Assembly (NCBI GenBank): GCA_964035545.1
Contig: OZ037771.1
Location: 8,301,408 to 8,365,407 of the forward strand
Direction: 5' to 3'
Length of the DNA stretch: 64,000 bases
Origin: Bugula neritina
Lineage: Eukaryota > Animalia > Bryozoa
This document shows positions 3,289 through 58,731 of the stretch, one piece after another. The position numbers and the translations under genes are program-made. Position 1 is the first letter of the stretch, and each line of letters opens with the position of its first letter. Under the pieces are notes generated by a model, which worked only from the letters and a program-made list of their open reading frames with translations, had not been told where the DNA came from and did not search any database.

Positions 3289-3507
3289 TATAAAACTCGC
3301 GCAAGTTTATAGTCGTTATCTCTGTGAGAAACCTCTGATGAAAAGTGTTTTTGTTAGAACGGGCCAAGGACTTATTTAAATGAGGCACAGGAGCAATTAT
3401 GACTGGATGCTCTTCCTAACATCACCAATGGCCTTTGTCGGGGTTTGAACCCATGACTTCGTGTTCACAAAGCAAACGCTCTAACCCCTAGACCATGGCT
3501 GCTCTCC
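3289..3507 (-). mobile_element. tRNA-derived SINE, near full length
   Basis: A-box TGGTCTAGGGG and B-box GGTTCAAACC on the minus strand; body shared with the 29096 and 51865 copies; TSD TAGTTATTAAAC at 3276-3287 and 3508-3519. Confidence 0.85.
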
Positions 3508-3747: not shown

Positions 3748-6207
3748 ATGAAGTCAATGAAAGATCAGCCAATTAACAGTAAGTATGAATTAAGTGTACA
3801 TGAGTCATTCACCACAGTACTTTAGCTTCTGAGTCATCAAATATTGGTATGGAATATAAATGATCAAATGACAGCCTATGCAAGTAATAAATAGCATAAG
3901 TTGAAGGTGCTGGCTTGTTTATAATATGTTGAGTTTTGCTCTTGTAAGTTTCCAGTTATTGATGAATAACTAATAAATATTGTTACAATGACTTTTAATT
4001 ACTGTTTAGTAGCAAGTGTATTACATACTAAATTACATACTATATTACATACATACTATACTACATCCTACATATGTTATGACATCATAATTATTTTGAC
4101 CCTTGACCTCGTTTACTTGGTGCCATTAGCCTTAGTACCTGAATTATGTTTTGTAAAATAACTTTTATCTCTCAATATTTAGATACTTTAATGATTACTT
4201 GTAAACTTTTCCATTCCCATAATTATCTTGATAGGCAGCTTCTGTGTTAATAACGACAATTTTAAAACTTTTACAAATATGCACTTTAATTGTCTACTGT
4301 ATCATCCTTTGCATGAAAAAGCGACTATATTTTCACATTTTTGCCACTATTCCATGCTAGAGTTGCATTTATACAACGCCAATGACTTCTCTTCGTGTAG
4401 GAATAGTACCAGATATACTGTATGATGAGAGATCTCTCTACAGGCAGGAGTACGTCAACATTCCTCCTCCATATTCTGAACAGTTACCATGGAAACCAAA
4501 CAGCTGCAAGACAGCAGCTGCTGCTGCAGGAGGAATTAGTAAGACAACATATCAGTGTTACATCTAGTAGAAAGTTTAATAAATATTATGTTTTTTAACT
4601 ATTCACCATCCTTTCTTAAATTATAGATCTTCAAACTCCATTTATTTTTTAATCAAACTTTGTCTCCTTAGAAAAAAATAGAAGTATGTGATTACGGAAA
4701 GGAAGAATGGTCACACAAATAAATTTTACAAAATTATTTCTAGCTACTTGACAGTGCATATCATTAAATATACTAATTATAATGAATAAGAAAATAACTT
4801 TAATCTGTTTGCTACAGTACCAGGTCAAAATGGACCAAGGTATGACAACCCTTATGGATTACTGAGAGTTTCTAATGAAGCTCAACAATATGAGAGTGCT
4901 GGAGAAAAGCGGACAAAACAATTAATAGCAGATAAAAAGCTGGCGGACCAAGAATTTGGGAAAGGTTAGTCAACCGAATGTATAGGTAGTTGTATAAATT
5001 AATTTGTTTTCTGCATTCTGTACTCCACAAACTCATGAATATGTATAATAAGGGTACTTTCAGATTCCCTACGCGCACTAAATGCATGATGAGGTATTTT
5101 GATTGTTTAAAGGATTGCTCTATCTTGTCTAATAAATGGTCATTTAGGTCAAACACACATAATATTGTGTTTTTCTAAGCATGCATTGACAAAAAGCATT
5201 TGACCAAAGGTAAAAAAAGTTAGTTGAAGTTAAGGGTGTAAATTGGTAACAGCCAAAACGCCGATTTTGAAATGAGCTGGGAAATGTGACGTAACAGCGC
5301 CAGCATTCCTGCTGGTCACGTGACTATACAAATGAATAACTATAGAAATATGACTGTGAGATGTGATCTTTCAGCTCGTAATTAAGTGCAAATGTGAATT
5401 ATCTCAATCTATAGTTTTTTGGCATGTTAAATAACATGTATGTGATAACATTAGGCCATATTTTGCTTGTAAGCATAGAAAAAAGCATTGCAAAAACATG
5501 CATTCTTTAGGATGAATGCCTGCGATCGATCTAAACTAGGCCAGATTGTGCAATATTACGGGCACACCAAAGCTGAGCTATATAGCGCACTGTAACTGCT
5601 TGAGCGTTATTGGTTGATGTTGCGCTCAGCAACCTTGAATACTAGCGTTATAGTTAGCACGTGCAGCATAGTTACTGGCGTTCACACGTCACGTATTAGG
5701 CTATTCTTTTTCATGGCTGAAAATTTTACCTCCCTCAAAATTGGAATTTTGAAAAGCTGTTTTCTAGGCATATATCCCTTTGCAAAGTCACAATTGTTTG
5801 CATACACATTAGATTATAGTTCATAATTATAATGTGATTGTAATAAACTAAGATAGAGCAATCCTTTAAGTCATTTTCATTTTGCTGAGTTTATGATTGG
5901 AAATCACTTATACTTATTGACGTTTTTAATTATGCTAGACAAAATATAATATGCTTTAAGAAAGCGTTCAAAACTTTGTCATAAAATGCTGACTCATAAT
6001 GTTATAGCAATTCCAGTTCCACGCCTAATAATGGATGAAGAGCCAATTGACAAGTTCACAGAGTACCGCTCTAGATACTGCAAGGTACTTCCTGGCAATA
6101 TGGAGCCTGTACCAGATGTGAAGCCAATCAGTAAAGGGCTCTATAAGTATTACCGAAATGCAGATAATTTTACATATAATCAGCAACATTCAAATAAAGC
6201 TTACTGA
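3748..6207 (+). CDS. Uncharacterised protein of about 171 aa with Mn-like motifs (possible ciliary/sperm microtubule inner protein)
   Basis: Exons 3748-3778, 4401-4538, 4818-4964 and 6008-6207 join through phase-1 GT-AG introns into an open frame: MKSMKDQPINRIVPDILYDERSLYRQEYVNIPPPY...IPGQNGPRYDNPYG...DKFTEYRSRYCKVLPG...KAY*. An acceptor at 3741-3742 implies an upstream exon (candidate ATG TCA G|GT at 1377-1383), so the N-terminus may be longer. Confidence 0.75.
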
Positions 6208-8651: not shown

Positions 8652-11600
8652 CTACAAAAATATCGTAGACTGGTAAAGCTGGAAACTAAAAACAACTAAA
8701 ATTAAACACATCTAATAAAAAGATTTGCTACAGGAATGCTGTTTGACTAGAGCAAACTTAGTACCTGTTAAAATGTTTCATTGTATGTTGTGATTATTTC
8801 AAACACAACTAGTCTTTAGATCTTTATTTAAATCAACTGACCAGAAACTTATTCAACAAAAAACTTACATTAACTTTTAATGTATATATTTCACTTATCA
8901 AATGTTTGCTTGAGTAACTATTTTTCTATTAAGTTTCAAATATTCATTTTTATGTAAAACTTGTTTACATAAGTGTGTCTACACTTTAAATAAATCACAT
9001 TTTCACTGAGCTAAACTTAGAGTTGTTTAGAATCTGAGCAAGGTTTTATGAGTTTTCCATATTGAAAACCAAAGTTTTTGAAATGGTATTACATTCTATA
9101 GAAGTTATTTATTAACAAATTATTAAGATAGAGAATTTACCAGAAAGTTCAGTCAGCTGTGCTCTGCGAAATCGTCTTATCATCTTGAGAGGATTAGTGA
9201 GTGTGTCTACTGAGTATATAACGTGTACAAACCACTTCCTTTCCAGCTCCTGTCAAAATGAACATTACAATAAGTTGTCCCTTAAGTTCTGTGCTTACAT
9301 GTTTACCCTATGTACCTGTAGTAACTATGTACTGTGTGTGTAACTATATACTGTGTCTGTAGCTACGAACTGAATGTAAAAATGGTAATAATGGCACAAA
9401 TGGAAAAGTAGGTAAAAGGCCACTGATGTTACATTTTCTCATACCCCAAACCCAAACTCCCCACTCCAAACCTAAATCTCCCATTCCAAACCCCAATATT
9501 AAAAATGTGTCATTTTTACCTATTTTGCCATTTGTGCCAATATTACCTGAGCCATTTTTACTGGTGCCATTTTTACTGGACACCACGTAATGACTACACA
9601 GGGACATCCTGGTAACCACATAATAATAATATCACACTTGATGAATAAAAGTAGATCACATGACTGTACAGGCTGCTATATTTCAACTTGCATATTGATA
9701 CAAGATTGTGACAAATTGACTGCATGTGGGCTGAGCTGCACCTGCCAAGTACATGTGACACATGTCACAACTAGCAAGAACCAAACACTTACAGCATTTA
9801 AAGGTTTACTGTCAAACATGAAGCCATCAGTGCCTGGCATGTTGTGTATCTGCTTGCCTTTCCTATCATCTGCAGCAAACTTAGCATTGAATGGTATACC
9901 ATTTAGAAGTTTCGTGACAGAATCAGGGTTGGTTTTGTCCTACAAATGCAAACATGTCTGTTAGCAGTGATAGTGCAACATCAATATTATACTGATATAT
10001 AAATATAAACCACAGATTCAACAATTCTATAGCTGCAGTTAAAGTTGTCTTACTTGCAGCTGATCGGAGTATTAATACGAATCACCTAAAAGTCTAAACC
10101 ATTGTTAATATTTATAGTGATGATGACTCCAAGTGATAGTAGATTGTGACTGAAAAGTGAGTAAAATAAACAAACAAAATACAAATTGATCTCTGGTGCT
10201 TTTTATCAGAACTATTGCTAAAATGCTTTTTAAAAACCATACATTTTGCACAACTATGAATGTCGGCTGAAAACAAAAATACCAAAAAGTAAGATAACTC
10301 TTGTATTTGATAAACACAATCTCCCTGGAGGAAAGTTCAGTGCCACAGCCATCTAATTTACTAGAAGTGATCTAATAGCATTATAATATATTTCTTAATG
10401 CGTATTTCTACAAGGTTTTATGATTTTTAAACTAACCAGAATAGTTTATATATTTGATAGTTTGAACACATTACAATAGTTGCCAAAAACATTTTACTCA
10501 ATGAGCTACTAGCAGGACTCACCAATATTATATATTGAGGTATTAGCAGGACTCACCAATATTTTATATTGAGCCTGAAGGTCCCCTGTCATAGCAGCAC
10601 ACCCGTATTCCTGACTGTCTGGTGCATATTTTGGGACAAAACCATTTTTCCCAGCACAAACATACACCTGGAACCAAAGTCACACCTCACATTTATAAGC
10701 ATAAGCACTCTATGGTGGATGTTTAACATTTTAATAAACCAGCCATGATATGCACCATGTATACACTTTACATGCACTAACTAATAAATGCTGTCAAACA
10801 ACCTGGTCATATATAATTTAATATATCTTTATATTGTACATAGCTGTTGTAAAATGATAGATTGATTAGTACTAAACTTAAATTTAGGTTGCAGAAATTT
10901 GGATGAATATAGTAATTATAATTTTATAATAATGTATGTACACTCTTTAATAAAAACCGGATAGCAACAAATGTAAGAGTTACCTTATCTACAAAAACTT
11001 CATGTGGCAGGGCAGTGTCATTCAGCTCTCTGGTATCCACTCTGCCGTAAATTCTCTCTCCACTCTGAAACGCCACATCTGATAAATCCTATAATATGAG
11101 TGTAAATATGCTTATTATTGGTTAACTTACACTAATAATACATATACTGGTACATCTACACAAATTACATTGTCTACATTCACACTGTATTCTTACACTG
11201 CATATACTGTGCTTACACTGTATGTACATGTATCGTATGTACACACCCTGTATGCATATGGACTGCATACACCAACACTGTGTGTACATGCACTGTATAC
11301 ACTTGCACTGTACGTACATGCACTACACACACTTACACTATATATACATGCACTGTATACACATACACTGTATATACATGCACTGTATACACTTACACTG
11401 TACGTACATGCACTACACACACTTACACTGTATATACATGCACTGTATACACTTACACTGTACGTACATGGACTACATACACTTACACTACACTGTTGTC
11501 TCTTCACATAATACTAACATAACCTGCCTCTACTGTCCTAATATAAATTATACATGAGAACTGTGTAAAGTTATGGAAGGTAACCCAGCGGTTCATCGCG

Positions 11601-14600
11601 TGCAGTGTATATCAATAAAGGCATTTCCAGACAAACTACTGCTTTAAAAACTGTCTGGTGTAATAAGCAACATGCTCTGTAGGTGTAGATCTCAATAGCT
11701 AGGAATCAATAGATGTGATTGACCAATGATGTCTAATTTTATTTTATAGATCAATTATTAACTGCCTGTCATTATAATATAATTAGAGTTTTGTAGGTGA
11801 GAGAGTAGAATTGGGTGTCAAAAAGGAACTCCAATATAGCAGTATTCCGCCATATTGGAGCTTCAATTCAGTGTTAAATGATTGCTAAGCCTTAGCTAGA
11901 AACAAATTAATAAAAAAATACTCTTGTATTTGATTGTTAAAGATTGAATATACATATGTTAGTTGTTTAGATAACAGAAAGGTTCTAGTACATTCACCAT
12001 ATGTACTATTCTACTACTAGACAGAGAGTAGCTGTGTTAAGGCTAAAAGTGAAAACTTTGATGTATTGAAGTGCTAAATATCCACATTTTAACCAAAATT
12101 CAAATGCATCAAAGTTTTCACCTCTGCAAGCAGACTAAAACCAAAATGCTGGCTACAGCTAAAGCTACAATAGAATAGGAGATGGTCTCACCACTTCAAT
12201 GGCCAGCTAGAAAGGCAATCAACACCAGCTGTATTTATCTATGTCATTATTTGCTCAACATTAGATGTAAAAGTATTAAACTTGACTCAAATAATAAACT
12301 GCAAGTAAATATGAAATTATATTCAGTCAAAACTTTAACATTTTCCTCAAACACCGTGCCACCACTAATTATGTTGCATACAAATGTTACATTCCCTAAC
12401 AAGGATATTTCAAGTACTCAACAAAAACAGTTTGTGCAACACGTGTTAGTTTGCATTTGAAGTGAGTCTTGGAGAAAAGTTGTGCTAGTTCACACAAATA
12501 TACTAATATACTTAATTTCTGAACCGCTCAGCCAACTAAAGTTTTCCTAGTTGAAAACCTGTGCTTAGCTAGACTTTACTGACTGCGAAAAATACTATAT
12601 CTCTGAGAGTTTACTAGTTCCCCAAACAACAACAACCAAAATAGCTGTAGTTCTTACAAAAATGTGTTCAAGTTTTATAGTTGGCCTGAATAAAAATTTG
12701 TGAATATTCTTCACCAATCAAAAGAAAGCAAGTCAAGTTTAGAAGTGCATGTTTCCAAATAAAAGTGCATACAATCAGGTTGATTAGATATGCAAACAGG
12801 ACACACTATTTTATTAAGACAGACTGAAAAGTAGCAACTTTACACAGTTACCTCTCCTGTTCGATTATTTGTAACCCAGGCACGCTTGTTCCTAGTTAGA
12901 GTAAGTTCGGTGTTGAGGTTAAACACCTTCGCAACCGGATTAGAGACTTGCTGCAATTCAATGTCAAGGTAAAAGGTGAGAGGTCGCTGTGCAGTGCACA
13001 CGGCGTCTGCAGAGTATGAAGTGTCAACAGGTACAACGCAAGGTATGAGTTTCACAATGTAGCTGCCAGTGTAGTCCTGTACCTGTGGAAACAAAGAGAA
13101 CACTACTGTAAACATTTCTTAATATGTTTGAACACATTTTTATTTGAATTATAAGTTGTCAATTGGTCTAAGATTCGATATCCTTAAATATATTATAATA
13201 ATTATAATCTAATTATTATTAAATTAAAAATTGCAAAACGTGTTTATGAATCGTCAAAAATAAACCTTATGCTAAGATACTAGAAGTACAGTACCATGTG
13301 TTTCAGTAGCTTTTTGGCAGCTTTCCAAAAACCATTGTGTAATGAAAGCTATTTGTGAAAGCTTTCGCGATAGCTATTTACTGACAGTTTTTGGTTGATG
13401 AGTCAGTGTAGCTCAGTTTTCCTCCTGCTAAAGATGCAGGCAATCTATACTTAATTGTCAAAATAATTGTGAGTATCAAGTATTATATTATCTTTTGTTT
13501 TGAACTTCATTAACTAAATGTTTTGTCAGCTATGTAATTAATGTTAAGTTAACAATATGTTTGTAATTTTCATGATTATAGGTTACAGTAAAGTAAAGTA
13601 AAGTAAAATACGAGTAAAGTATGAGTTCAAGTGTGAGTCTGAATTCAAATATACTGTTGGCAATAGACAAAAAATAGAGTTGTGGCCTGCATCTGTGTCC
13701 TCCATCCATTCACCCTTCATTAAGTGAATTACAATACATGGGCATCCGTGCCAAACAGCATCCGTGCTGACACAGTAACAATTATTCTGAAAGATAGTAG
13801 TCTACCCACTCAACATGGAGGACAAAGAGGAAATTGTCCAACTGAAGTTACAAAGATCGAAGTTGAAGACCAGGATAACTTCATTGAGCAAACAGCTAAG
13901 TACTAATTCCAACTCCAGTGACTTAGAACTTTTTCAGCAGCTATATAGACAGTTAAATGAAGCTTACTCAGAGTTTAATGACATTCACGCAAGTTATTGC
14001 GAACTAGTAGAGGCAGATGATAAATATGAAGAGTACAGAGTTGTCTCCTCTTTAGACTTGAATGCGTATTATGATGTAGTGAAACAAACATATGATGAAG
14101 CTGTTACTGCTTTTAATAGAGTTAAGTTAAAGCTAGTAGAATATGACATTGAGTTTGCATGTACCACTGCTAAGCAAATGCTACATGAGTCAAGTGACTG
14201 TGATATTTTAAATGAACATATTATTTTATGTAAAGAATTATCTAAGAAATATTTTGATATAGTTGGGCAAATTCATGTAGATTTAAGAAATGTAATATTG
14301 GAAATGCAAACCTCATTCCGAGCTCGTGTTAACATTTCACATTTACCTGTTAGTCGCAATAGTAGTTCAACTGTTTTGTCTGGCACCGATAACGGGCATG
14401 CGGCGCAGGATCGGCTGGGGCGAGGCGGTGTTCGCGATGTAGCCGGCGTTTCATTCGGTGGGGCTTTGCAACCTGAACAAACACCAACTGATGACAACTT
14501 GAATAAATATCCTGTAAATAAGGATGAGCAAGTAGATTATTCTTATCTAGCAAACAATAGCGCAAGCAAACTCCAGTCTCCGCGTTATGCAATTCCATCT

Positions 14601-17600
14601 AGAGATCTTACCAGCAAACGATTCTCCATTGTTTCAGCATATGCAGGGTACGAACCTCCACCCCTTAACCTTTCATTGAGTAAATCACAGCGCGAAAGTA
14701 ATGAGCCTGTTAATCGTGAACATGCTTGCAATTCTAAGTTTAAGAAGTACCCCCCACCTACATTTAGTGGCATACGCCGAGAATGGCCCGAATTTCGCAC
14801 AGTCTGGAGGCGTTACGCGGCTTTCGAGTTTCAAACAGAAGAGGAAAGAGCAGCAGCTCTTAGAAGCAGTCTCAGTGGTGCAGCATTCGACTGCATAAAA
14901 TCCATATATTCACACCAGCCTAATGCCTATGAGCGACAATGGGATAAGCTAGAGAGAAAGTACAGTGATGTGAGCTTGTGTGTGCAGAGTGTATATGATG
15001 AGTTGAGCAGGTTAAAACCAATATTGAGCGAGGACCACAGGGCGCTAGTTCAGTTTGTCGATGAGATAGAGCAATGCTACAGCCAACTTGCAGAAATTGG
15101 CCAAACGTCTGCCATTACAATGTCACATATTGACGAACTGGTTGATAAGCTACCGAATTCTATCAAAGAGCAATGGTGTGAGATATATGAAAGCTTGAGT
15201 GTTGAGTGCAAAGTTCACCCGTTGCCAAGTTTCATGGGATTCATGGAAGACCGCAGACGAACAGTATCACGGTTAGCTGAACGTCAGACATATATCAATG
15301 AAAACAAGACCTATGTGGTCAAACAGAATAAAAGTCATGCAAGAACATTGACTTTCCACACAAAATCTCAAAGCGATAGCCAAAATTGCTTAATTCATGT
15401 TCAAGCTAAGCATTCAACTGTGGAGTGTAAAGTATTTCATGGCATGTCAATGGATGATAGATTTAAGTTAGTGAAAACCAACAGAGCTTGTTTTAGATGT
15501 TTTGGTGCTCATAGAAGAAAAGATTGCAAATCGAAAAACAGCTGCAGTAATTGTAATGACAATTACCATCATTCATTGCTATGTAACAGACAGAAAGATC
15601 ATGCTAAAGTAGAAAATGCATGCCATAAAGCTGTGGGAAAAATTGTCAACAATCATCTGGTACAACCTACTGTAGAGGAAATTATTTTTCCGGTTCAAGA
15701 GGTTCCTGTGGAAGGGCTTAGTGCCACAGCACTACTCATGTATGACAGTGGTTCTAATTCATCATACATCAGTTTTGATGCAGCCCAGCGAGTACAAGCA
15801 AAGCCAGTGAAAAGTGATATTTCACTAAACATTGCAGTGTTAGGGGGCAAAGCTAAGAGTCTTAAAACGAAGCTATATGAAGTAAAGCTGATCAATCAGG
15901 AAGGTAAAACAGAAAGAGTGACTGCTTATGGCATTGACAACATAACAAGTCCTGTAAAATTACCAAACAACACTAAGATAGCCAAGATCTTCCCTGACAT
16001 CGACCTACGACTTTTGTACAGGAAGTCATCGACTGTTGACATCCTCATAGGGTTGGACAATGCGCACATAATGCCAGAAAGGACAGTGGTCAAGACAGAA
16101 CAAGGATTAAGGATTATGGAAAACACATTCGGAATTATGTTGCAGGGGCCGATGACCGATTCAATTCGATCCTCTTCAAGATGTAATGTGACACAAATTG
16201 AAGGCAGCGATCGGGTTTCTCATGGAGCTCGTAAGCTTCAAGTACAAAACAATGTTAATGCTCATGAGAACTTAGAAGTATTGAAAGAAATACTGCCTGA
16301 GTACTATCTACAAAGTTGCAGTGAGAGTGAGCCTGGAGACAGTAGTGAAGTTAGTCAGTCAGTGTCTGGCACAAGTTCCAGCCAACCACCTGAATCTCAG
16401 TTAGGTCTCTCGCAAATGAAACAAGAGGAAGGCGAAGGTGACGCTGAGCATCCAACAAATTTGTTGCTGCAGACTTTAGATAGTTTAGCAGATGAGCATG
16501 ACCTCCAGTCTGATGACAGCAACCAACCTGTCATCCCTTCCACAGTAGAAATAGACAAGTCCAACAAACCATTGAATTATGAAGAAAATACTGCTCAAAT
16601 GTTTACCTCTTTTTGGAAGTGCAAAAGTTTTCCGAAAGAACCAGAAGTAAAATTGAAAGAAATCACTCCTCAAGAGCCGCGCCAACAAAAAGTCTTCACA
16701 AATCCAGTGTATGATAAATCTCAAGCAAGTACTGCAAGACATTTTTACAAGGCTAAAATAGGAAAGATTCAAATTGCTACGGAAGGTAACGTGAATGAGT
16801 GGTGGTGGATTAAGAGCAATAGCAATTTAGCGGATTGGGTAAGCAGAAAGTTAAAAATCATTGTAGCGACGCCCAGTGATCATAGAGAAAGTTGGAAATG
16901 TAGTGGCAGTAGCAGACAATTTCAGTACAATACGAAACATTTAGAGTTGGCTCTAGGGTGGAGTTCATACAGGGTGCAAAGAGGCCTGGTGATTCATGCG
17001 GTGCAGAACCTGGCATTGCTCGTCTCGGTCGATTAGGTGCGCTTGTAGGTTCGTGTCGGTGCCAGACCAAACAATCATTTTACACTAAATTTAACAGTGA
17101 GGTTTGCAATATATCTGATAAGCCAAATAGTATTTTTGCTTACTGTTAAGTTTTTCACATTCCAATGTTATGTTTTTTGTTGCCGTTAATTTTTTTCTAC
17201 TGTTATTTTTTGATTAAATTAGAAATTTAATTTAATCAACCCCGCCCCTCCGGTGTTTCAGTAGCTTTTTGGCAGCTTTCCAAAAACCATTGTGTAATGA
17301 AAGCTATTTGTGAAAGCTTTCGCGATAGCTATTTACTGACAGTTTTTGGTTGATGAGTCAGTGTAGCTCAGTTTTCCTCCTGCTAAAGATGCAGGCAATC
17401 TATACTTAATTGTCAAAATAATTGTGAGTATCAAGTATTATATTATCTTTTGTTTTGAACTTCATTAACTAAATGTTTTGTCAGCTATGTAATTAATGTT
17501 AAGTTAACAATATGTTTGTAATTTTCATGATTATAGGTTACAGTAAAGTAAAGTAAAGTAAAATACGAGTAAAGTATGAGTTCAAGTGTGAGTCTGAATT

Positions 17601-20600
17601 CAAATATACTGTTGGCAATAGACAAAAAATAGAGTTGTGGCCTGCATCTGTGTCCTCCATCCATTCACCCTTCATTAAGTGAATTACAATACATGGGCAT
17701 CCGTGCCAAACAGCATCCGTGCTGACACACCATGTATGTTACAACTTTTTAGTGAAATTTAATAAAAGTGATGCAGCTGTAAAAGTATATAAATATGATT
17801 CCTTGTTTAAGTTAGAGAAGATATGAAATATTCAGTTAGTAGTCAAAGTCTTACAAAGGGTTATCTTAAGTGTTGCTTGTTGAACAAGTTTCAAAAAATG
17901 ACAAGAGCACATGACTCACAGCACTTTCAGAAACAAATTGCCATGTTTGTTTAGGATTGTCAAAAGTATTTTCTGATTGGATGAGTTGCAGTTGAAAAGT
18001 AAGCTGCAGATGGTCATGTGACGTGACGCTGGATTGAACTCCTCTTTCCTCCATGATAAATTGTCCGTAGAAGTTGGGCTGAGTCTGGAACTCAACAACC
18101 AGCTGACCATTCGTCTGGATTTTGACAGAATGTAGGAACAGTCTTCCAGATACGTCTGTGGAACTGTAAGTAGCAATGGAACAGTATTTATGTCTACACA
18201 GAGGCACTGTACTGGGATAATATAGTAAACAAGTCATGCCTTGAACATATGTGATTAGTAATCATTTGATACATAATAGTATTTTTTTCTCCATAGTCTA
18301 CGTGGTGTGGGTAACAATCGCACTCATTTACTATAGTCTCTCTTTAGTAAGTATTACACATGGTGAATCCATCTTAGCGTTAATAGCAGACAACCAATAT
18401 TTACCAAACAATAACAACACTTTGAACATGTGCAGTTTGTTAATATAAAAGCTTTCAAAACTTTGAAGAAAGGAGTTTTGGCCGATTATGACAATTCTCT
18501 GAACAATATCATGACATTATAAGAGCCACACATCAGATATAATTGTAAATTAAAAACATATAGAATGTGAGTCAAAGTATCCCAGCATGCAAATGAAAAC
18601 TATGCTCAATATTCTAGAATTAATGTAATAAATCTGACAGCTTGTTAGTTGTTTGGTCGCACCCAACAGATAGCAAAATTAAAATAAAACATTAGTTGAA
18701 ACAATATTTAATGATGCTATTAGCGTAAATTTTTGATATTTTTTATTGGAATACAATGAGGCATTGCAACATTAACAAGAAAAAAATGCCTCACTACTAT
18801 GGAGGCCATCATAAAGTTCTCAGTTTTCATTTTAGTGCATAAAACTTAAGAAATTAAAATAAATCTCTAAATGCATTGCGTTTACCTTGGAGCACCTTGA
18901 TCGGCTTGTATGTTGGATACACCATCCGTGAGAAGCATTGCTGTGTCATACACAAATGTGATTCGCTGATTGCTGACGAGGTCATAGTGCAACCAGCCAC
19001 CCGGCGCTGACGGAGAGTGGAAAACATACGACACGTAGATTGGTATGACTAATGAGAGGTAGGATTCTGTCAAGTCTGCATTCTACATTGAATAAAAATA
19101 TATTTGCAAACCAATTTTTCAGCTACAGTGATCTAATCAATGCTTTAGCATATAGACAGTCATTTACCTGGCCACTAGTCTCGACTACTGCTCCGCACAC
19201 ATTCACAAGTTCTGATATCTTGAAAAACCCGTGGAATTGCCACATGCAATTCTCAAGGTCAAGGTTGCTGTAGAATCCAACAGATTTGTCTTCCCTTAGT
19301 TCTCTGTCATACTGGTATGGAAACAATGGCTCATCAGCTTTTTTGTTTTCTCTCCATCCAACACTTAGACTATTTTCTGCTCCCCACACTAGATTTGAGC
19401 ACCTGCAGTAGTTATGTAATAGTAGCTTAATGCAAATTTAATTATAAAAATAACATTTTAATAATATAAAAATTATAAGTAAAAATAATAGTAGTTTAAG
19501 TATGAGCCATGGTTGATTTACAATAAAATTTGATTGCAATCTATTTAAATGCAATTTGTAAAATGAAAACTTTACTGTGACAATAAAGTATTTTACTGTA
19601 GTGACATTTTGAATAGCAGCACCTGATTTTGCTGACAAAGTTAGAAGAGAGTTAATACCCGCTACCCAAACAGGACAAATCGGAGATAGGTGAGAATACG
19701 TGAGAATTAGAAGAGAGTTAACATACATACTAAATGATAGACAGACATACAGAAATATGAAAAGAATAGCAACCTGTGAAGACCAACTCTGGATGCAGAG
19801 GGTGACAACATATACTCAAAGTTTGTCAACTTCTCTGTAGATATTGTTGGCAACATGCCATCTCTGTGAGGTATGGACACCGACAGCTTGAGATAGTTTG
19901 TGTATCTCTTGTGTTCTTTGCCTTCAAAAATAGGAGTAGCTATCATCAGTCAAAAGGTTTAATATGCAAGCTTAACAAGACTGCATGCAAACAACACAAA
20001 TGACTTTAATATATGTTTACAAATAATACCACTATTACATCTTTATAGCAAACTCTAGTATAAAATGAGCATGCAGGTAAGAAAAGTTGTTAAATTATTT
20101 TTAAAAAATATTTATTAGTTTGCACTCCAAGTCTCTAAGAACATTACTCAAGTATTTAAAAGCATGACTCAAGTATTTAAGAGCCTTACCCAAGTACTTG
20201 ACTTTAGCAAGATACGGCTCATCACCAGAGAAACCAGGACGACGAGGTTTGCATATGCCTTCAGTAGAGCTGATAGTTACAATGTTGCTCTCTCTTTCTA
20301 AACCTTGGTACAGCGAGTTACTGCAAGCTGTGGCAACGCACTGTACTCGAGACCCTGTATGACAGAAGAAATGTGGTATACCACTCACAGCAACCATAGT
20401 ACTAAAGCTTGTCTTAGAGAATACATTAGTAGATATTAGTTGTCAATGTTTAATCATTGACATAAACTAAATTTTAAAGACTCTTAAAATTCACTTCAAC
20501 AATTCACTAGACAGCAGCTCTAACTATGGAGACAATCATTTAAGTGCAGTGGGAGAAACATTTAGTTTTCTCACTAAATTTTAGCTTGGGGCGCAAGCTG

Positions 20601-23600
20601 AAATTCTTGTGAAAAAACAACTTATTTTGCTACATTTCTTACTTAGAACACAAGTTTTTCTCTATGACAGCGCCTACCATGGCAGTATGAGTTTTATGAA
20701 ACATGACATTTTTATTAGCTTATATTTCGATCAGAGAACAAATTGAGTGTTTGCACATTTCATCTTTGGTTTTGAATTAAAACTTCTAATAAGTAAAGTA
20801 CTTAAAATAACCTTGCGGCTACTTTATGCACTATATCTGTAGAGTTGAGACAAACCTGGTCCGAAGTATATACTCTCCAGGGTTTGCACTTGAGTTGTTG
20901 CTATAAAGCTGTCACTAGATGCCGTCTGAAGATCCATGGTCACCCCATTCCTTCCTACGGGTGCTCCAACCTTCCATCTGTATGTGGTAAAGGAGTTGTC
21001 TATACCCTCATTGTCACATATGACTTTAGTACGGCTGTACTCGGGGTGTCTCGGGTCACAGGGCTGTAAAGATATTAATAGCACCAAGTGGCAGATTATA
21101 TATACTCTAAAGTCTAGAGTATATTAAAAAGCAGCAGAAAAATAATTTTTGCTAAAAATCAGCTTGTTAAAAGCAAAAATATATTAGGAGAAAGTTTAAA
21201 ATACCAACATTTTCCTCTGTAAGTATATAAGTTGACAATTTTTTTCCAAATAATATGATCAAATTTACACAAGTATAACTTACATATCTGTAATACTACA
21301 AATTAAAAGTTATGACATTGTAATATTGTGTAGTATGTAAGCTTACCGTGACACAAATCAATGGGTAGCCATTGACGTATGTGCTAGCTTTGCCAGCATT
21401 GTCGTAATCCTTGAGTGAAACAACTACCGGGTCGATGGGGAATATAAGCCCAGTGACACTCCCCTCATCCGTGATGTAGACTGAGCACCTGCTGGCATCA
21501 AGGGAGGCAACTCCATTTGAGTCGGAGGAGAGCAGCACCTGGAATATATCAGGAAGAGTTGTAGAAGGATATACTAGCTGTTGTAGACTCAGGCCAGCAG
21601 GTCAATTGTGAGTTATAGAACTTGAAGAAAGCATAGCTATGTTGAGTTTGAATGGTGCTAAGAACTAATTCAATTCTATATCATGAATGATTTTTTACTC
21701 ACAAAGAAGTTCTTGCGCAGTTCCGGCTCTCCGTCATACAAGATGGTAACTTCCACTACGCGTTCATTGACACCCGGCCCAAACTCCAACTCTGTAACAG
21801 TAGAAATATGTCGTGAGAGTTGGTTCGTAGTTTTCACATAGAACGATGTAATACACACGGAAAATCCAGCTGATTACCTCGTGTCAAGTCAATATAGTCT
21901 ACTCCATTAGTCGCGGATCCTTCTTTAGTATAAACAGTGACTATCGAAACTCTACTAAGGTCTCCCTGTCTTTCAATTACAATTCTAGCAGTGCTTGCGC
22001 TTGTGTTTGACGATGGCTCAGATGTATAGACATGAGTGTCAGCAAAACCTATCACAGGTTCTATACAAAAGAATAAACAAGAATACAATGACAAAATACA
22101 ATATGAGAGTTAGACAACTTTGCAAAGAGTAATTTACTACAGGGTGTTGGTTGAAACTAATATCTGTATCTCTCAGATTACATGTATGCAGTTGTTTTAC
22201 TTTTGACTAGGTTTAGCATGGTATCACAAAATAACAAAATAAAATTACTAAGCTTCAAACATAACATATCATAGCGAAACCTACCTTTTACTACTTAATT
22301 ATTGGCAGTAAAGTCAGATTAAGTGACAATAAATTTGGCAACTGTTCTTAAAAACTAAACAATTGACATAATTATCTACACAATACATACTATCTTCATC
22401 ATCTGTGATAGTAACTATAGCAGTTTTTACTTCATCCTCCACATCACCAGTCAGTATCATCAATTTGAAAGTCTCGTCTCCTTCATAAATGCTGTCATTA
22501 ATTATTGTCAGGTCAAACGACGTTTCCCGTTCACCTGTTCAATAGAAATTATAATTTTTTAAACTAAAAAATTCTAATACACACCCCATTATGATATCAG
22601 TTTCTAACTATTTTGCTCTTGATAGTTTAGTAAATAGCGCTAAAACATTACTGAAAAAACTTTATACTGTCCAACTGGCACCAGAAAATTACTTTTATAT
22701 TATATTTATAAATTTCTTTTTATTCTTGAAACAATATAAATGTCGCTTTTTAAATTTAGGCCAGCAGTATATCACTTTCTAGAACTGAGGCATGCATGAC
22801 ATCAGTATGAGTCATTTATTCTACCTGGCTGAAAAGTCACAGCTGAGAGAGCTGAGCCACTTCTCCTCGCAATGAAGTCTACATCCTGACTAGCGGTTAT
22901 TGTGGTGGAGACGCACTGAATTGTACTGGTAGTGCTGACATCGCCGTATCTACCCACTGTCACAGTGAGGGTGCCGTTAGACTCGCTGACTTCATATCGA
23001 CTCGCAGTGAATGCAAACTTGGGGATATCAATCTCGTCTTCTATAGCTATCGTGGTGTGGCTAGGGTTGGCTATAATCATATACTAGTGATATAGAGAAA
23101 TGAAATACATAGGCAACACATTGTGTTAATACCATACTATACATGTCACGGGCATATCATTACACATAATGATATGTCAGTAACACACAAGCTATGCATT
23201 TAGGAGCAGTGGCGGAGAAATTGAGATAGCCTAAGTTCTCTAATTTGATACTTTTACGAGGACATAACTTCTTATGCTACATTTCTAATCTATAACAAAG
23301 GCTTTTCTAAATTCTTCCATCACTGCACCTACCTCAAGCTATGCTTGTTTATGACTTGCAAATCAATTTCTCAAATTATGTAAAGCTTTTGTTGCAACAA
23401 TCTGTAGGTTATATATAGGCTGGTACAGACCAACACACATGTTGTTTTGTTGTCATTAGTTTCCACAGGGCCAACACCCAGGTACATGAATATTACACAC
23501 ATTACCAGACTTACCAACAAGGGCATTGTCAGGCAGACTGAGGAGCAGCTGAAAAGTCTCTCTCCCTTCCACCATCGGCATACTTCTATCATCGAGGATA

Positions 23601-26600: not shown

Positions 26601-29600
26601 TTTTCAAGTTACTACATCAGTTCAGCCAATCAAATTAAGCTACTCCATCAGCCAAGAACTTCACATGACTGCGTTATATGACATCCTAGAGTCTAGACAA
26701 ACATTACTGTTGGAAACATATATGTATATAAAGTAAAAATTATTTGCTAAAAGTGTTAATTTCTGCTATTAAAAATGTACTCTGTTTGCGCTGAAGAGGG
26801 GACAAACCCCAAAATAGCTGCTGCATACAGATTGATGCATGCACTGTACTGTATGCACTTTGCTACAGAGTAACACATGGACACAGTATCAACATGCGTG
26901 TTGCAGCAGCTCTCTGGATTATAGTGCTACGAGACCTGAATTCCCAACAGAATAATAATAAAAAAGAAGAGAAATTATCATTCAAAGAGCCGAGCTCACT
27001 TTCTGGGGCCTCCTGACAGGTGTGTTGAGGTTTGGGTAAACGTAGAACCTGTTGTGAGTGCCATCTGTCACCTTGACCTTGAAGCTATCCTCTATAACCT
27101 GATTATTTGAAGCCTCTGGCCCCATGTGTTTGTATGTTATTAGACCATTCTCTAGGTGATCTTGAGTGAACTGTGTGGTCGGCTGGCCAGATAACAATAT
27201 GGATCCAAACAGTGATGGCTGAAAACAATCACCGAACAGGTATAAATGAAAATGAATATAAACAAAAAAAACCTAGCAAAATAAATTGATTAATAGTTTA
27301 TAAATAATTAAATATTGTAATTCAACATGTTTAGTGCTCGTTATGCAGCACAGCATGGAATAAGCCGGATAGAATATATGTGGATGTGTATCTAGTGGAA
27401 GAAGTTAGAGGGGATGGGAGAACATGGTTTACAATGAAACTAAATGTTTTTTCATTTCACAGCTATAACATTTAAGTTTTAAAAAAGAAAACAAATTTAC
27501 ACAACTTTTTTCAATCACAAAAAGATTTTAATTAAATTATGATGGAAGTAAATTTTATAACCCATTAGCAAATTTTGAAACATATTATTTATAGATGTGA
27601 AAATTCTGCTGGCTATCTAGACAACTGAGTGGCAATATTTCTTCCAATCAAATTAGTTTAGCATTTGCTTCACTTTCCAACTTTCTCCTAACTGATGGTA
27701 AAGTAGGCAATGCGTAAAGACTCATCTTTGTCAAAAATAAAACATTAGATACAACTTAGTAAGGGTTATACACTATACTGAACTATAGTCTTGTATAATA
27801 AAAAGTGTTATCTCTAAGAATATTCTAGACTTAGTTTTTTTTGCTGTTATGTGTTTGCAGTTACACAACCAACTGTAATAACATAACTATGCATTCGGTA
27901 TTGCATTCTGTTAAAATCAGAAACTCTCAGCCTAAAGTGCAGCTTATTGCCTCTATTTGCAAGACTGCATGTTTACATTGTCAACTTTAGCAATTTGGGG
28001 ATGTCTTGTAAATTAATGCCAAAGAAATTAGATACAACATACTTATTAAAACATTGCAATAACTTTCTAGGCTCATCATTATGTATTTAATCAAATTATT
28101 ATCAAAACATTAAATCCTGTTCCTGAGCTGCTTTTATTTACAATAATGGCTATATTCTGGGTTATGTAGATAAGTGAGGCCTTTTTGCTTGTTAATTTTT
28201 ACACTAAAATAGTTTGTAGAGCCTCCAATCACTGGAGAGAACATTCAAAACATTCTGCATAGCCTATATTACAGACAGTATCCACATAAGTAACAGGCAA
28301 GCATCTGCAAGCACCTGTTGCTGTAGAGACAACCATAACTACCGACAGAGCATACAAAGAGAAGCTGAAAGTAAACAGCTCAAGAGTGGCGATGAAACCA
28401 TCTAGCAAAACAAACCTGCGTGACGGTGAAAGTCAGCGAGTCAGATGCTGTGTCTCTGTCTCGGGCAGTCAGCTGACTTGGGGTTATATAAGTTGACCCT
28501 TTTTCTCTCAATCTGATTGGCTGAATCATGAGAATCGGTAGTTGATTGTCGGCTGGTATAATGGAGATGCTGAATGCCCGGTGAAGTGGGTTGAAGCCAT
28601 CAGTTACCTTCAGGGCAGATAAAAACAACAACCATTTGAAGAAGAACGTCATAACTTACTACAGCAATTTGTATTAATAGATTGATTAAGTTGATTCTTT
28701 TTTGTAGAGAAACAGCTTCTGCAGAGACAGATGTTTTGCTTCAATAAAATATTACAATTGCTTTACCTTTGCCAGTTACATGTGATGATTTATGCTGTAC
28801 ATTGAGCACAGAAATACCTCAAATTCGAAGGCATCAGAAGCCTGGCGACTAGAGCCAGTGTGTGTATACTGAACTCTGCCAGCCACCAGGTCTATCTGAG
28901 TGAAGGTGCTAATCTTTCTCCCGGGACTTGTGATGAGTTCTAGACGACCGTTTTGTGGCTGTGCGGTTACAGTGAAAGTGATAGACTCGGCGCTGGATTT
29001 GTCATCCCATGCACTCAACATGTCAGTGGTCAGAATAACACTACAATAACAAAGTGTGACACAAAATATAACTGTTTATATAGATACACTAATTAGGGAG
29101 CAGCCGTGGTCTATGGGTTAGAGCTTTACCAAGTAAGCACAAAGTCATGGGTTCGAGCCTGGACAAAGGCCATTGGTGATGTTAGGAAGAGCATCCAGTC
29201 ATAATTGCTCCTGTGCCTCATCTGAATAAGCCCTTAACCCGATTTAACAAAAACCCTTTTCATCAGGGGTTCTTACAGGGATGTTGACTATAAACTTGTG
29301 TGAGTTTTACATAGATACAATAACTAGACACACAGTGAGGATGTGGAAGCCCTAACATCTAGCATATTAGTAAATACAGTTAACCACAGTATATACTGTG
29401 CTACAGACTAGTAGACTATGGACTAAGTTTTTAGTCTGTACCTCTGATTAGTAGGGAGCTCTACCCCCCTGTTCACCACATCCGGATACACCATGTCCAG
29501 TGGTTCTACACTAATATAAAATCTCTGGTTTATCTGGGAGTTTCTCTGTCTATCACTGATGTCTAGTTTTATCACATCTCTGACACCATATCTTCCATTG

Positions 29601-32600: not shown

Positions 32601-35600
32601 CATAATCAACAGGATGCAATAATATTTTGGCTACACCCCAGTCTTGCTAATTTTAAAACATTGCCAAATGAAATATGAAAAAGAATATTTTTCCAAGTTA
32701 TTATGAGGTTTGCATACACTTCTTGGCATCTAGGCATCTCTCCTGTTGTATGATGAAAAGATAATAAATATATTAACATCTCTACAGCACCAACACCGTG
32801 TAGTCTAACTGTTGCTAGACTTTAAATCTTATTGATTAATATATCTAATATTCAATGTAGTCATTTATGTTTCAGAGAAAAGGCTTTTGCATAGGACTGT
32901 GTGAATTTTCTGATCATCAAAAATCAGTTTAGAGCAATCTAAGACAAGATGAAGAAATAAATGTTTACATTGTTCATTGGAGAGAGTAGTTAAGTCACCT
33001 TAAATTTTCAACTCAAATAAAATTATATGACACAATACACCTCAGTTTGCCAAAATAAATAAAAAAAAAGAAAATAAAAAATAAATAAGATAGAATGATT
33101 TATGAATTATACACAATCAAATTTCAGCAACATTTTCTAAAACACAAGAATAAAAGGTTTTAGTGATAAACTCTGTTGCAAATGTACTTATATATCTAAA
33201 TATTAGAAACCTAAATTGAATTATGTGTGTGTGCATGTGTGTCTACATACATGCATATATGTATGTATGTAAATAATTATAATTACAAAAATTAAATTAT
33301 CTAATGTTTTTTAAAACAACTAAATTATGTGCCAAGGAATTTAAAAATTTGATAAATTTTGTAAAAACTTGGGTTTCAATACCTAATAATCTATCTAGTA
33401 TATAATTGAATATTCAATTTACTTTTCTTTAATAAAATAAACCAATAATTTAATATTAAACAGTAAACAAGTATTCTATTTTGTTGTTTTAGTAAGTGCA
33501 AAGCTTGATTCCTGGTATTTTAAGGCTTTAAAGGAACTATATCAATTGAATGACATCATATATATGTCCTCTCCAAGTACAGCTTGCACTAGTGATGGTA
33601 CATTAGCATTTTGTTTATTTCTCTAGAAATTTAAATGTATGCATGTAACCCAGTGCTATTTATTCCCCTGTGACGTGACGCACTAGATGTTGTAGATACT
33701 TCATAATTTAATTTGTATTCTAGGTATTGTATAATTTATACAACATTATGCATATATTGTATTCAGTACATATACTATTGGGTTTACCATATAATGTTGT
33801 ACATACTACATACTGAGTATAACATGTATACTATTGTAGGTGTATGGCACCATAATTATTGTAGATATTTTCAATCTATAAACTGGAGTCAATTTAAATG
33901 GAAGTATTTCTCTAGGCAACAGTTAGATTAAAATATCAGGTCATACCTGTTTTGTATCTTTCCTTTATAAACATAAAACTGGCAATAACTAATAATGTTT
34001 TACTCTAATCTATTTTGAAACAGAGATGTTAGAGCAAAGGTGTCTAACTTTTTCAGAGTGAGGGCCACTGAAAGGGAGTATCTTGGTGGCGAGGACCGCA
34101 TTACAAACTTTAGCATGTACTGGGGGTGGGGGGGGGACAGCGTCAGTATTTTTCCAACTACTTTTTTATTCCAAAACTTTATGAATCGTTACACAATTAA
34201 GTGCCCATAGTTACTATAGGCTGCATATTTTGTAGCATGTGTATAAATAAAGCATTTGAAAGAAGTTTGTTTTTCTTCAATTCACTGCATACCTATATAT
34301 GTGAAAAATAATCTTAGCTTTATGCCTTGGAGGGTCACATAAATGTAGGCTGGAGACCACATCCGGCCCTAGGACCGCCTGTTGGACAGTCCTGGGGCCG
34401 CCTGTTGGCCAGTCCTGGGGCCGCCTGTTGCACAGCCCTGCATTAGAGTATAAAACAGTTTGGTGGGTCATTCTTCCATCCCAACCAGTAGCAGCAAGGA
34501 GCCATCACAAACAGCTCTATGAAACACTATAACTATTTCAAAAGTTAGAATATCGTTCATCACACAGTCGCGATGCCAGCTAAATTTAATAATAAACATG
34601 GAAAAGCTAGAAATGAATTTTACTATTTCAGTTTTACATAATGGATGCAGGGAATTTTTCTCTAAAAATTGGTCATGTGAAACTTTTTACAGAATTTATT
34701 GAAATATTAGCATGTGTGCTACTGCTCAAATAACACATACACAATATAGTTGAAATTTCATGTAACATCATAATTACATCCAACATTGTTATGATACTGT
34801 GCACTTGATGATTTGGTTGAAATATGTGAAGATATTGTGGACACAACTCTTAATAAAAAATTTGATGGCCATGGGAATAAGTTGTAAATGAAAAGCTGTA
34901 TATTATTACACAATGTTACTTTATCACCATGTTTCCATGAATAAAATGGAAAATCCCATCGCATAATGCAAAGGATGGGAATGTAGTGGTAGTGTATAAA
35001 AGCTGCATAAGTATCCCACTTCAAATTTGATATAGAACATTCCAGTGACTTTGAATATTGAGTGAGAATTGCACTTACCAAGTTGGGCAAACATAGTTTT
35101 AGTCAAAATCACATAAGGAACAATAGTACACTAATTATAACTTATTACTGCTATGTGTGTAGTAATTAACAACAGATCTATTGAGGAATGGATTGGAGAT
35201 GATGCTTCAGCTTGACGGGCTATTGGGCAATCACTGCCAATCACATTGCCATCCTTATCGTGGGGCATACATAAGGAGCTCTAACTTCAGGATCTAATTA
35301 TCTTACAACTGGCAGCAGTTAAAGCAGCAACCTAAATACATAATGCAGAATTTCTGTGTTCGGATTTTATTTCTGTTAGCTATTATAAAAGGTTAACACT
35401 TTTAGTAGCAAACATGTTACTCATTGCTCAAATACACATGCTGTTTAAAGTTTTGTACAGCTGAATGAGGTTATACTGAAACTGCTTTATTGTAGAGAGC
35501 AGACAAGTACAATGCTACAACTGTTATACTAATAGAGACTCAAAGTCTGGCTTGGACAGGGACACAAAATGCCGACATGCGGTAAGTGTATGTGAGCCAT

Positions 35601-37468: not shown

Positions 37469-37548
<80 letters not shown>

Positions 37549-38376
37549 GCATATATATACATATATATATTTTTTATATATATTTTATATATATATATCT
37601 ATATATATATATTATATAATTATATATATAATGTATATATATGTAAATGTATATACAAATGTGTATATATAAAGTATCATTAAATGGGTACAATATGAAA
37701 ACTTATTTTTCACATTTGAAAATTAAATCCAGGTGTAGTTGTTTGTCACTAATATAATTTAGTGTTGGAATCACATTTTAAGATTCACAAAAAGTAATTT
37801 CACAATGCCTTAAATACAAAAGTGTCTACAAGAACTAAAGCTCAAGTAACAAAACAACACTATGATAGTGGTGAGTTAAAACCAAAGTGTGAGATATAAT
37901 ATGCAGGTACATCCCAGCTTGTAGTCTGCAGGTATAATATTATCATAAATAGCAAAGTAGCTAAATATTCAGATATATCTATAAACAGTGACTTTGGTAA
38001 GCAACTGCTAACTGTTACTAATTACTGCAAGCTCTTACTTTCTTAGTTTAATGTATATCTGTTAACTATTAAGGAATAGCTTCAACTTAAAACAATTTAA
38101 TTTCTCACAGAAAGAATAGCATAACACGGTGAATGTTGAAAAATAGCTTGATGCAGCACAAATTGTGTTGCCATTGAGTGCAGTGGTTGGGGGTTTGGAA
38201 TTCGGACAATGACATGTATACAAACATTGCACTCAGTGACTCCACACTTTGTGCTGCACCCAGCGATCCCTTTGCCGCTGATGAGCTAGCATTACATTTC
38301 AAGCCTACAGTGGTTTTCTAAATAAGCTTATGTTCACTACGAGGTGTAGTTTTAATTTGCACACTGAAAGAAGATT

Positions 38377-38467
<91 letters not shown>

Positions 38468-58525: not shown

Positions 58526-58731
58526 GGTTATTTTGTCTTTGTTGTAAAAATTCACACTGTCCCAGCAAGAAATTATTGAAACAAATTTTTGCTTAAATTT
58601 GTTAAATAATCTGAAACAGAGTTAAAATACTCTGGTTACCTAAAATACTGAAAAAATTAAACTTGAGAGAAATGCTGTAGCAAGTTCCAAGCTTCAGACT
58701 AGGTTTCGTGAGTTGTACTTGTTGAACTTAC

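Follow-up and report, generated by a model that had tools for sequence, protein, structure and literature searches.

This report concerns a long terminal repeat (LTR) retrotransposon in the genome of the bryozoan Bugula neritina. The element lies at positions 13299-17729 of a 64,000-nucleotide stretch of DNA (assembly GCA_964035545.1, contig OZ037771.1, positions 8,301,408 to 8,365,407 of the forward strand), which is referred to here as the window. All features of the element are on the plus strand. An earlier interpretation made from the letters of the window, termed the sequence-only reading, had described a very young Bel/Pao element that keeps Gag and protease in one intact reading frame but has lost reverse transcriptase (RT) and integrase (IN). 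We find that other loci hold diverged copies with the same RT- and IN-less layout, and that the Gag and protease regions have been under purifying selection since these enzymes were lost.

The element and its single open reading frame

The element is 4.4 kb long and is bounded by two LTRs of 476 bp (5′ LTR, 13299-13774; 3′ LTR, 17254-17729). The LTRs are 100% identical and have the ends TG...CA. The exact repeat measures 477 nucleotides (nt) because a G precedes each LTR by chance. The 5-mer CCATG directly abuts the outer edge of both LTRs (13294-13298 and 17730-17734) and forms a perfect 5-bp target-site duplication (TSD). Both the LTR ends and the TSD are within the norm for Bel/Pao elements, which have TG...CA ends and a duplication of 4-6 bp. 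The mismatch-free LTRs and the perfect duplication reported in the sequence-only reading are therefore real. Since the LTRs are identical and the TSD is perfect, the window copy is a recent insertion made by an integrase-type reaction.

A single open reading frame (ORF) of 1073 amino acids (13815-17036, stop codon included) fills 92.6% of the internal region and leaves 257 nt uncoded, in agreement with the description of one stop-free frame nearly filling this region. It is the only ORF of more than 200 amino acids in the window. The N terminus of the ORF lines up with the N termini of full-length relatives, which indicates that the ORF begins at the native start codon. Residues 1-262 (13815-14600) form a coiled-coil-like N-terminal region of Gag, of which residues 1-105 resemble the N termini of the relatives P0019, P0021, P0012, and others. 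The Gag core domain DUF1759 follows at residues 317-459 (14763-15191; E 7e-11), and the Pao-type aspartic protease domain DUF1758 is located at residues 637-775 (15723-16139; E 2.7e-6). Both domain matches are above the curated cut-offs of Pfam.

The translation and a profile alignment also reveal two CCHC-type zinc knuckles (residues 559-571 and 577-590; 15489-15584), both of which are intact. The profile was built from 18 full-length Bel/Pao polyproteins of 1650-2400 amino acids that were found by our searches. Residues 6-794 of the ORF align with profile positions 3-614, which cover Gag, the two knuckles, and the protease (E 1e-131). Within this region the protease motifs DSG (residues 644-646; 15744-15752) and ILIGLD (residues 743-748) are intact and align with the profile. 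The element thus has the Gag of the Bel/Pao superfamily, with DUF1759 and CCHC knuckles, followed by a DSG/DUF1758 protease, and a tree of this region (see below) also places it inside the Bel/Pao Gag-protease sequences. Pfam and the profile agree with the earlier statement that Gag, knuckles, and protease look intact, and the two domains together with the LTRs and TSD agree with the assignment to a very young Bel/Pao element.

Beyond the protease, the ORF departs from full-length relatives. Pfam detects neither RT nor an RNase H core nor integrase in the ORF. When the profile of 18 relatives is compared with all three forward frames, positions 615-1168 (RT and RNase H core) and positions 1212-1768 (integrase and DUF5641) are both unmatched. 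The RT, the RNase H (PF05380 region), and the integrase with DUF5641 that define complete Bel/Pao elements are all missing from the window element. A hidden Markov model search for a divergent RT or IN inside the ORF, which the sequence-only reading had named as one of the observations that would overturn it, detected neither. Its claim that RT and IN are lost, based on the lack of YxDD and HHCC/DDE motifs, is consistent with both the Pfam and the profile results.

In place of RT and the RNase H core, the ORF carries a tail of 174 residues (795-968; 16197-16718) that is rich in Ser, Glu, and Gln. The tail by itself has no match in Pfam at E≤10 and none in the profile, and BLASTP and searches of the relatives yield no homologues outside the family, so that it is seen only in copies of this family. 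We considered the possibility that the tail is a frameshifted RT and rejected it, since the other two forward frames have no profile match. The tails of 15 other Gag-protease proteins with unmatched C termini show no mutual similarity, so they do not share a new domain.

The tail is followed by a short vestige (residues 969-1013; 16719-16853) that aligns with profile positions 1169-1211 (19 bits, E 8e-9). By BLASTP, the vestige matches seven relatives of ∼2000 amino acids, the best of which is P0021 (E 1.4e-7). Its counterpart in these relatives is located directly after PF05380 and well before the integrase zinc finger, and the vestige is therefore the C terminus of RNase H, at the junction between RNase H and IN. 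The persistence of an RNase H C-terminal motif had been recognized correctly from the letters. Because the vestige is in-frame and colinear, it indicates descent from an autonomous element. Two other proposed remnants fared less well. The sequence FWKCKSF, which had been taken for the vestige of a linker after the protease, does not align with the profile. Likewise, the supposed DUF5641-like end is rejected: the last 68 residues score −0.9 bits against the DUF5641 sub-profile, and 1400 of 1923 shuffled sequences score at least as well.

Diverged copies and selection on Gag and protease

At least five related copies are present, on contigs designated L005, L006/L007, L009, L010/L011, and L012, which are 82-91% identical to the window element at the nucleotide level. 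Close fragments come from the JGI samples 3300002729 and 3300003318, where the contig names carry AY690838, the accession of the B. neritina mitochondrial genome. Furthermore, a 71-amino-acid protein is identical in both JGI samples and in the B. neritina assembly GCA_010799875.2. Given the name prefix and this identical protein, we take the contigs to be B. neritina DNA. LTRs are recognizable in L009, L010/L011, and L012 and are 82-91% identical to the window LTR. A block of the LTR at ∼13436-13478 that is conserved among copies probably marks the promoter region. The two readable 5′ LTR edges (L009 and L010/L011) have flanks unlike those of the window element, and these copies consequently occupy other loci.

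All three contigs that extend past the protease (L005, L009, and L012) enter the same tail, and every contig that covers the tail enters the same RNase H vestige. L010/L011 and L012 run on through the 3′ untranslated region to the 3′ LTR, and L009 ends soon after a 144-nt segment described below. No RT or integrase was found within any of these copies. As a check, the sequence-only reading had asked for copies with shared deletion junctions and different TSDs; copies that share the junctions at other loci exist among the B. neritina contigs. Since the RT- and IN-less junctions are shared by diverged copies, the loss of RT and IN predates their divergence (dS ∼0.2). The layout therefore belongs to an old lineage and is not a one-off product.

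These data bear on the possibility that the window element is an autonomous element that suffered a dead-on-arrival deletion during its own reverse transcription. Deletions during reverse transcription are frequent, and the window holds a single copy. Both facts could fit such an origin. However, the same junctions occur in copies that are 9-18% diverged and reside at other loci with differing flanks, and none of the full-length relatives contains a homologue of the tail. We regard a one-off deletion as extremely unlikely.

The copies also clarify the end of the ORF. An in-frame deletion of 144 nt (48 codons) at 16846-16847 is specific to the window lineage, as ∼144 extra nt are present at this site in L006/L007, L009, L010/L011, and L012. 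In L009 and L010, the ORF ends with a TAA ∼40 codons before the stop codon of the window element, and L010 and L012 have frameshifting indels within the stretch that matches the last codons of the window. The earlier stops and frameshifts indicate that the last 40 codons of the window ORF are not conserved coding sequence and that its stop codon is not native. The whole of the last 60 codons (16854-17033), which have no similarity to integrase or DUF5641 and meet an earlier stop or a frameshift in relatives, are not conserved as coding. At least two large deletions that left the frame open to the native stop had been proposed. The RT/RNase H core and IN are indeed absent, but the stop is not native, and the first gap is not a clean deletion because the 174-residue tail occupies it.

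Further damage is common in the family. In the sub-family comprising L006/L007 and L010/L011, the knuckles and protease (window 15053-16194) are also lost, whereas a gag fragment, the tail, the vestige, and the LTRs are kept. L010/L011 carries an insertion of ∼754 nt inside its 5′ LTR, and further internal deletions are present in L009, L010, and L012.

To evaluate selection, dN/dS values (the ratio of nonsynonymous to synonymous substitution rates) were calculated pairwise by the Nei-Gojobori method in the reading frame of the window element, with a neutral expectation for the p values that 79% of changes are nonsynonymous. For gag compared with L006, dN/dS is 0.24 (51.5 nonsynonymous and 51.5 synonymous differences; p = 1e-10), with values of 0.28 for the N-terminal region of Gag and 0.18 for the DUF1759 core. 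A similar value of 0.25 (p = 1e-7) is obtained for the knuckles and protease compared with L005. The tail has dN/dS values of 0.73 against L005 (p = 0.16) and 0.58 against L006 (p = 0.06), which are not distinguishable from neutral. Gag/protease and the tail differ from each other in this respect (Fisher p = 0.001-0.007). RT and IN were already missing from the two lineages under comparison, so that Gag and protease continued to be maintained once these enzymes had gone. These results demonstrate purifying selection on Gag and protease following the loss of RT and IN, while the tail drifted as a neutral relic. Together with the shared junctions, the related LTRs in diverged copies, and the young age of the window copy, the dN/dS comparison across copies bears out the suggestion that the deleted form is an old lineage that still transposes.

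The same values count against a passive passenger, an element of the LARD-like kind that is mobilized wholly by the proteins of a helper. Under this explanation, the ORF would be intact only because the copy is young, and the apparent constraint on gag and protease would derive from repeated template switching between the element and a helper whose gag resembles its own. The tail is neutral and yet still open, further-deleted variants that lack the knuckles and protease (L006/L007 and L010/L011) keep their LTRs, and all related copies seen are broken, each of which a passenger would explain. In contrast, dN/dS is ∼0.24 for Gag and protease over a dS of ∼0.2 between two lineages that had both already lost RT and IN. 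Moreover, the three independent contigs that continue past the protease all lead into the tail and not into RT, and no helper-like gag more than 42% identical to that of the window and attached to RT was seen in the protein searches. A passive passenger is therefore improbable in our judgment.

Purifying selection on gag and protease without RT or IN is also what would be expected of a domesticated host gene of the PEG10 or SASPase type, kept for a cellular or antiviral role, and one spliced transcript of B. neritina does include a piece of the tail as an exon. A gene of this kind would sit at a single orthologous locus and be free of LTRs and TSD. The window element has identical LTRs and a TSD, which signify recent transposition, and multiple decayed copies are found at different loci. 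In addition, the exonized piece is the neutral tail rather than gag and protease. Domestication has, we believe, almost no chance of being correct.

The transcript in question (L008) is an observation in its own right. Its segments 400-776, 776-850, and 850-1075 match genomic B. neritina sequence L014 at 100%. Nucleotides ∼76-642 of the transcript are 77% identical to the tail and the start of the vestige (window 16197-16763), and this tail-like part lies partly in the first block matched by L014 and partly upstream of the start of L014. The last exon encodes KAF6021070.1, and a piece of the retroelement family has been exonized into a 344-amino-acid ORF (P0052).

Relatives, priming signals, and surroundings

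The ORF was looked up as an exact sequence among public assemblies and was not on record there. Scanned in full with HMMER, a set of 1.84 billion representative proteins yielded 7277 matches, which fall into three groups. The first comprises short fragments, 67-90% identical, that span all parts of the ORF including the tail. The second includes many proteins of ∼850-1020 amino acids that contain Gag and protease only (36-42% identity). The third consists of equally distant full-length polyproteins of ∼2000 amino acids (33-39% identity), including XP_067939577.1 (P0018) from the bryozoan Watersipora subatra. P0018, an NCBI annotation model, carries a Fibrinogen_C domain at its C terminus, and P0027, an ORF from an ENA contig, has parts of a Bel/Pao polyprotein fused with the OB/AAA domains of a proteasomal ATPase. 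These fusions with host domains are probably chimeric predictions.

The RT- and IN-less layout recurs in more distant members of the same clade. L001 (sample ERZ25072490) has LTRs 4761 nt apart and 96-98% identical, around a frameshifted gag and the 967-amino-acid protein P0001. The Gag-protease region of P0001 is 38% identical to that of the window element and is joined to a different RNase H remnant (profile positions 998-1136). L002 (sample ERZ6864376) is a 4271-nt contig whose ends (1-48 and 4224-4271) overlap by exactly 48 nt, giving a unit of 4223 nt in which the only ORF is the 996-amino-acid Gag-protease protein P0012. An exact end overlap is the usual outcome when an assembly collapses two LTRs, and L002 is compatible with an element with Gag and protease only whose two LTRs were collapsed, with a tandem array of such an element, or with its one-LTR circle. 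For a further protein of this type (P0015 on L004), no RT was found in its 218-residue tail or in the following 490 nt. The tails of P0001, P0012, and P0015 are mutually unrelated. In a quick maximum-likelihood tree of the Gag-protease region, the window element groups with P0012 (SH-aLRT 85) and then with P0001 (80), inside a fully supported clade of eight members that also contains the full-length Watersipora element.

Canonical priming signals are not evident in the element. The 12 nt that follow the 5′ LTR, GTAACAATTATT (13775-13786), do not contain TGG, and there is accordingly no tRNA-type primer-binding site (PBS). Nevertheless, this PBS-position sequence is conserved in L006/L007, occurs together with the LTR end in three copies each in L010 (9400-9475) and L012 (3690-3755), and has similar counterparts after the LTR of two distant elements, L001 and L002 (L002:22-33). 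The 19 nt before the 3′ LTR (17235-17253) are C-rich and pyrimidine-rich on the coding strand, so that no polypurine tract is present. This C-rich tract (ATCAAC..CGC..CCTCC..GG before TGTT), putatively acting at the polypurine-tract position, is conserved by alignment in L010 and L012. It is also present with two small gaps in L001 (13022-13043), although the proteins are only 38% identical, and a search for the motif in L001-L008 found it only in L001. In place of a tRNA-complementary PBS and a polypurine tract, both typical of Bel/Pao elements, the element has putative substitute motifs that show conservation among the copies of the family.

A 9-nt complement of the PBS position is located in the conserved LTR block (13462-13470, and also 17417-17425). 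It pairs with the PBS position in the predicted minimum-energy fold of 13449-13800, and a match of this kind arises by chance in 6% of shuffled sequences. Such pairing would fit Tf1-like self-priming, which should be taken as a lead only. Scans of the window for tRNAs and Rfam families gave no match.

The window element, P0012 on L002, and P0001 on L001, all verified as LTR elements with Gag and protease only, are just ∼40% identical to one another and come from different samples. They might all belong to one ancient lineage that lost RT and IN a single time and then persisted and diversified in a range of hosts, living off or alongside autonomous Bel/Pao elements as their long-term parasite or partner. 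This lineage would have its own noncanonical priming signals, with GTAAYA...ATT after the 5′ LTR and the C-rich tract in place of the polypurine tract. We consider this scenario possible but rather unlikely.

An autonomous partner with a similar LTR, which the sequence-only reading had suggested should be sought, did not emerge from the protein searches or from two metagenome scans. Even the nearest full-length relatives are not close enough to be the partner, and when the extended RNase H junction of P0160 served as the query, the family itself was all that was retrieved. An ORF-based search of metagenome contigs gave 54 pattern matches, none of which is a relative, and a DNA pattern for the conserved tail had no match in a collection of metagenome contigs that does not contain the small JGI contigs. 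A decayed fragment of the integrase/DUF5641 type from another Bel/Pao element is located ∼100 nt upstream of the 5′ LTR of L010 (L010:7833-8060). It was rejected as a helper with the same LTR because it contains stop codons and lacks the C-rich tract.

The window is AT-rich invertebrate sequence that does not resemble human DNA, and it includes exons of a FREM/FRAS1-like extracellular-matrix gene on the minus strand (22802-58552). Recognized exons encode Frem_N (57959-58552; E 1e-20), Cadherin_3/CSPG repeats (domain matches at 45344-45733, 39945-40265, and 28380-28649), and a Calx-beta domain (domain match at 22802-23077). The retrotransposon is antisense to this gene and lies ∼5 kb past the last recognized exon, either in an intron or on the 3′ side. 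Tandem arrays whose repeat units measure 15, 22, and 32 nt occur, together with long (AT)n/(GT)n microsatellites, at 11184-11520, 35537-35932, 49906-50493, and 37431-38500. Short dispersed repeats in inverted orientation are 80-88% alike (3330-3468 and 29133-29271; 23246-23342 and 46269-46365; 46276-46445 and 56034-56194). The last pair also matches the B. neritina sequence L014:456-625 at 69-82%. Interspersed repeats common to the window and B. neritina loci are only 70-82% identical, and the GC content of the two is similar. The dispersed repeats probably represent an interspersed family shared with these loci.

Interpretation and known systems

We consider it likely that the element represents, as a young copy, a semi-autonomous family of Bel/Pao LTR retrotransposons, probably one found in bugulid bryozoans, that lost RT and IN in an ancestor, kept Gag and protease, and borrows the missing enzymes in trans. 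The ancestral loss would have taken RT, the greater part of RNase H, and the entire integrase, and the family would have gone on transposing. The RNA of the element would be enclosed in particles that consist, at least in part, of its own Gag, perhaps with the Gag of a helper mixed in, and its own protease would mature the polyprotein and the particles. RT, RNase H, and IN would then be supplied by an autonomous Bel/Pao element of the same genome. Because no helper was found, the use of an own capsid with borrowed RT and IN is something that we infer. The features expected of a semi-autonomous element are present: an intact Gag-protease ORF bounded by LTRs and lacking RT and IN, the same deleted layout in several copies at different loci in B. 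neritina contigs, and transposition after the loss, as the LTRs and TSD of the window copy are recent and the loss is older than a dS of ∼0.2.

Several points weigh against this interpretation. No second copy of the LTR or ORF is present within the 64-kb window, and every related copy that was seen carries damage. The dN/dS values were obtained by pairing the window element with copies that have decayed, which inflates them. A helper that escaped notice and whose gag is nearly identical could, through recombination, produce what looks like selection on gag. The searches described above found no autonomous helper, and the nearest full-length relatives are only 33-39% identical in Gag and protease. 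Finally, there is no recognizable tRNA-type PBS or polypurine tract through which replication would be primed in the usual way.

Cooperation with a helper and interference with it cannot be told apart from sequence. The Gag-protease product could lower the activity of the helper, as in a defective-interfering genome or a Gag-derived copy-number control factor, and such an element might be tolerated or favored by the host. This explanation shares the evidence for the semi-autonomous family, since selection on gag and protease in an element that is unable to replicate by itself fits interference as well as cooperation. Nothing observed separates the two, and we assign only a slight probability to interference.

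If the semi-autonomous explanation is correct, then the strategy of keeping capsid and protease while borrowing enzymes, which is documented in cereals, also originated among the Bel/Pao elements of animals and has endured long enough for selection to leave its mark. The element would be a compact natural system (4.4 kb, one ORF) for asking why a parasite of a parasite keeps Gag and protease, with cis-preference in packaging, capsid dosage, and helper interference as candidate reasons. For annotation, an ORF of ∼1000 amino acids from an invertebrate genome or a metagenome need not be a fragment when DUF1759 and DUF1758 are its only domains, and may represent a complete element. The noncanonical primer sites, if real, bear on how this clade primes DNA synthesis.

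Deleted LTR elements that depend on relatives are known from other hosts. The IAP I-delta-1 and ETn/MusD elements of the mouse are internally deleted or noncoding LTR elements. They cause insertional mutations more actively than any other members of their family, and they use full-length relatives in trans. They are vertebrate endogenous retroviruses with young deletions and known helpers of high identity, and IAP I-delta-1 carries a gag-pol fusion, whereas ETn encodes nothing. In plants, TR-GAG elements are a recognized class of short nonautonomous LTR elements that have a gag-type ORF only. The window element likewise keeps a gag-type ORF, but it adds a protease and is 4.4 kb in length, and no sequence kinship is expected.

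By descent, the window element compares with autonomous Bel/Pao elements of lophotrochozoans such as P0018 of Watersipora subatra, a member of the same eight-member clade whose Gag, knuckles, and protease are homologous (39% identity). The domain order of P0018 is colinear with that of the window element, and the motif at the end of RNase H is part of this colinearity. Unlike the window element, which lacks the two corresponding profile segments, P0018 and proteins like it have PF05380, the integrase zinc finger, and DUF5641. A full-text literature search found no semi-autonomous Bel-Pao element, and for nonautonomous Bel-Pao elements it returned only noncoding or truncated cases; neither result is proof of absence.

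The closest functional parallels are found in wheat. RLG_Sabrina_SA and RLG_WHAM have been described as semi-autonomous Gag-protease LTR families linked to RLG_Wilma, their presumed autonomous partner, and RLC_Fatima 1.4/1.5 (Ty1/copia) likewise has Gag and protease only (PMC9744471, PMC6097303). RT and INT are absent population-wide from these families, yet they have amplified recently (PMC9744471, PMC6097303). Like the window element, Sabrina_SA, WHAM, and Fatima are bounded by LTRs, have an intact GAG-protease ORF without RT/INT, and have transposed recently. The wheat families comprise thousands of copies and have an identified partner, whereas only a handful of copies and no partner were found for the family described here. 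The in-frame RNase H vestige and the long relic tail also distinguish the window element from them. Sabrina_SA and WHAM are Ty3/gypsy elements of wheat and barley and Fatima is a Ty1/copia element, so that plant superfamilies are being compared with an animal Bel/Pao element and the resemblance is convergent. In function, the window element thus joins a kind that is already known, which it resembles through convergence rather than shared descent. Its own descent makes it a Bel/Pao derivative in which the RT, RNase H, and IN features of that superfamily are lacking.

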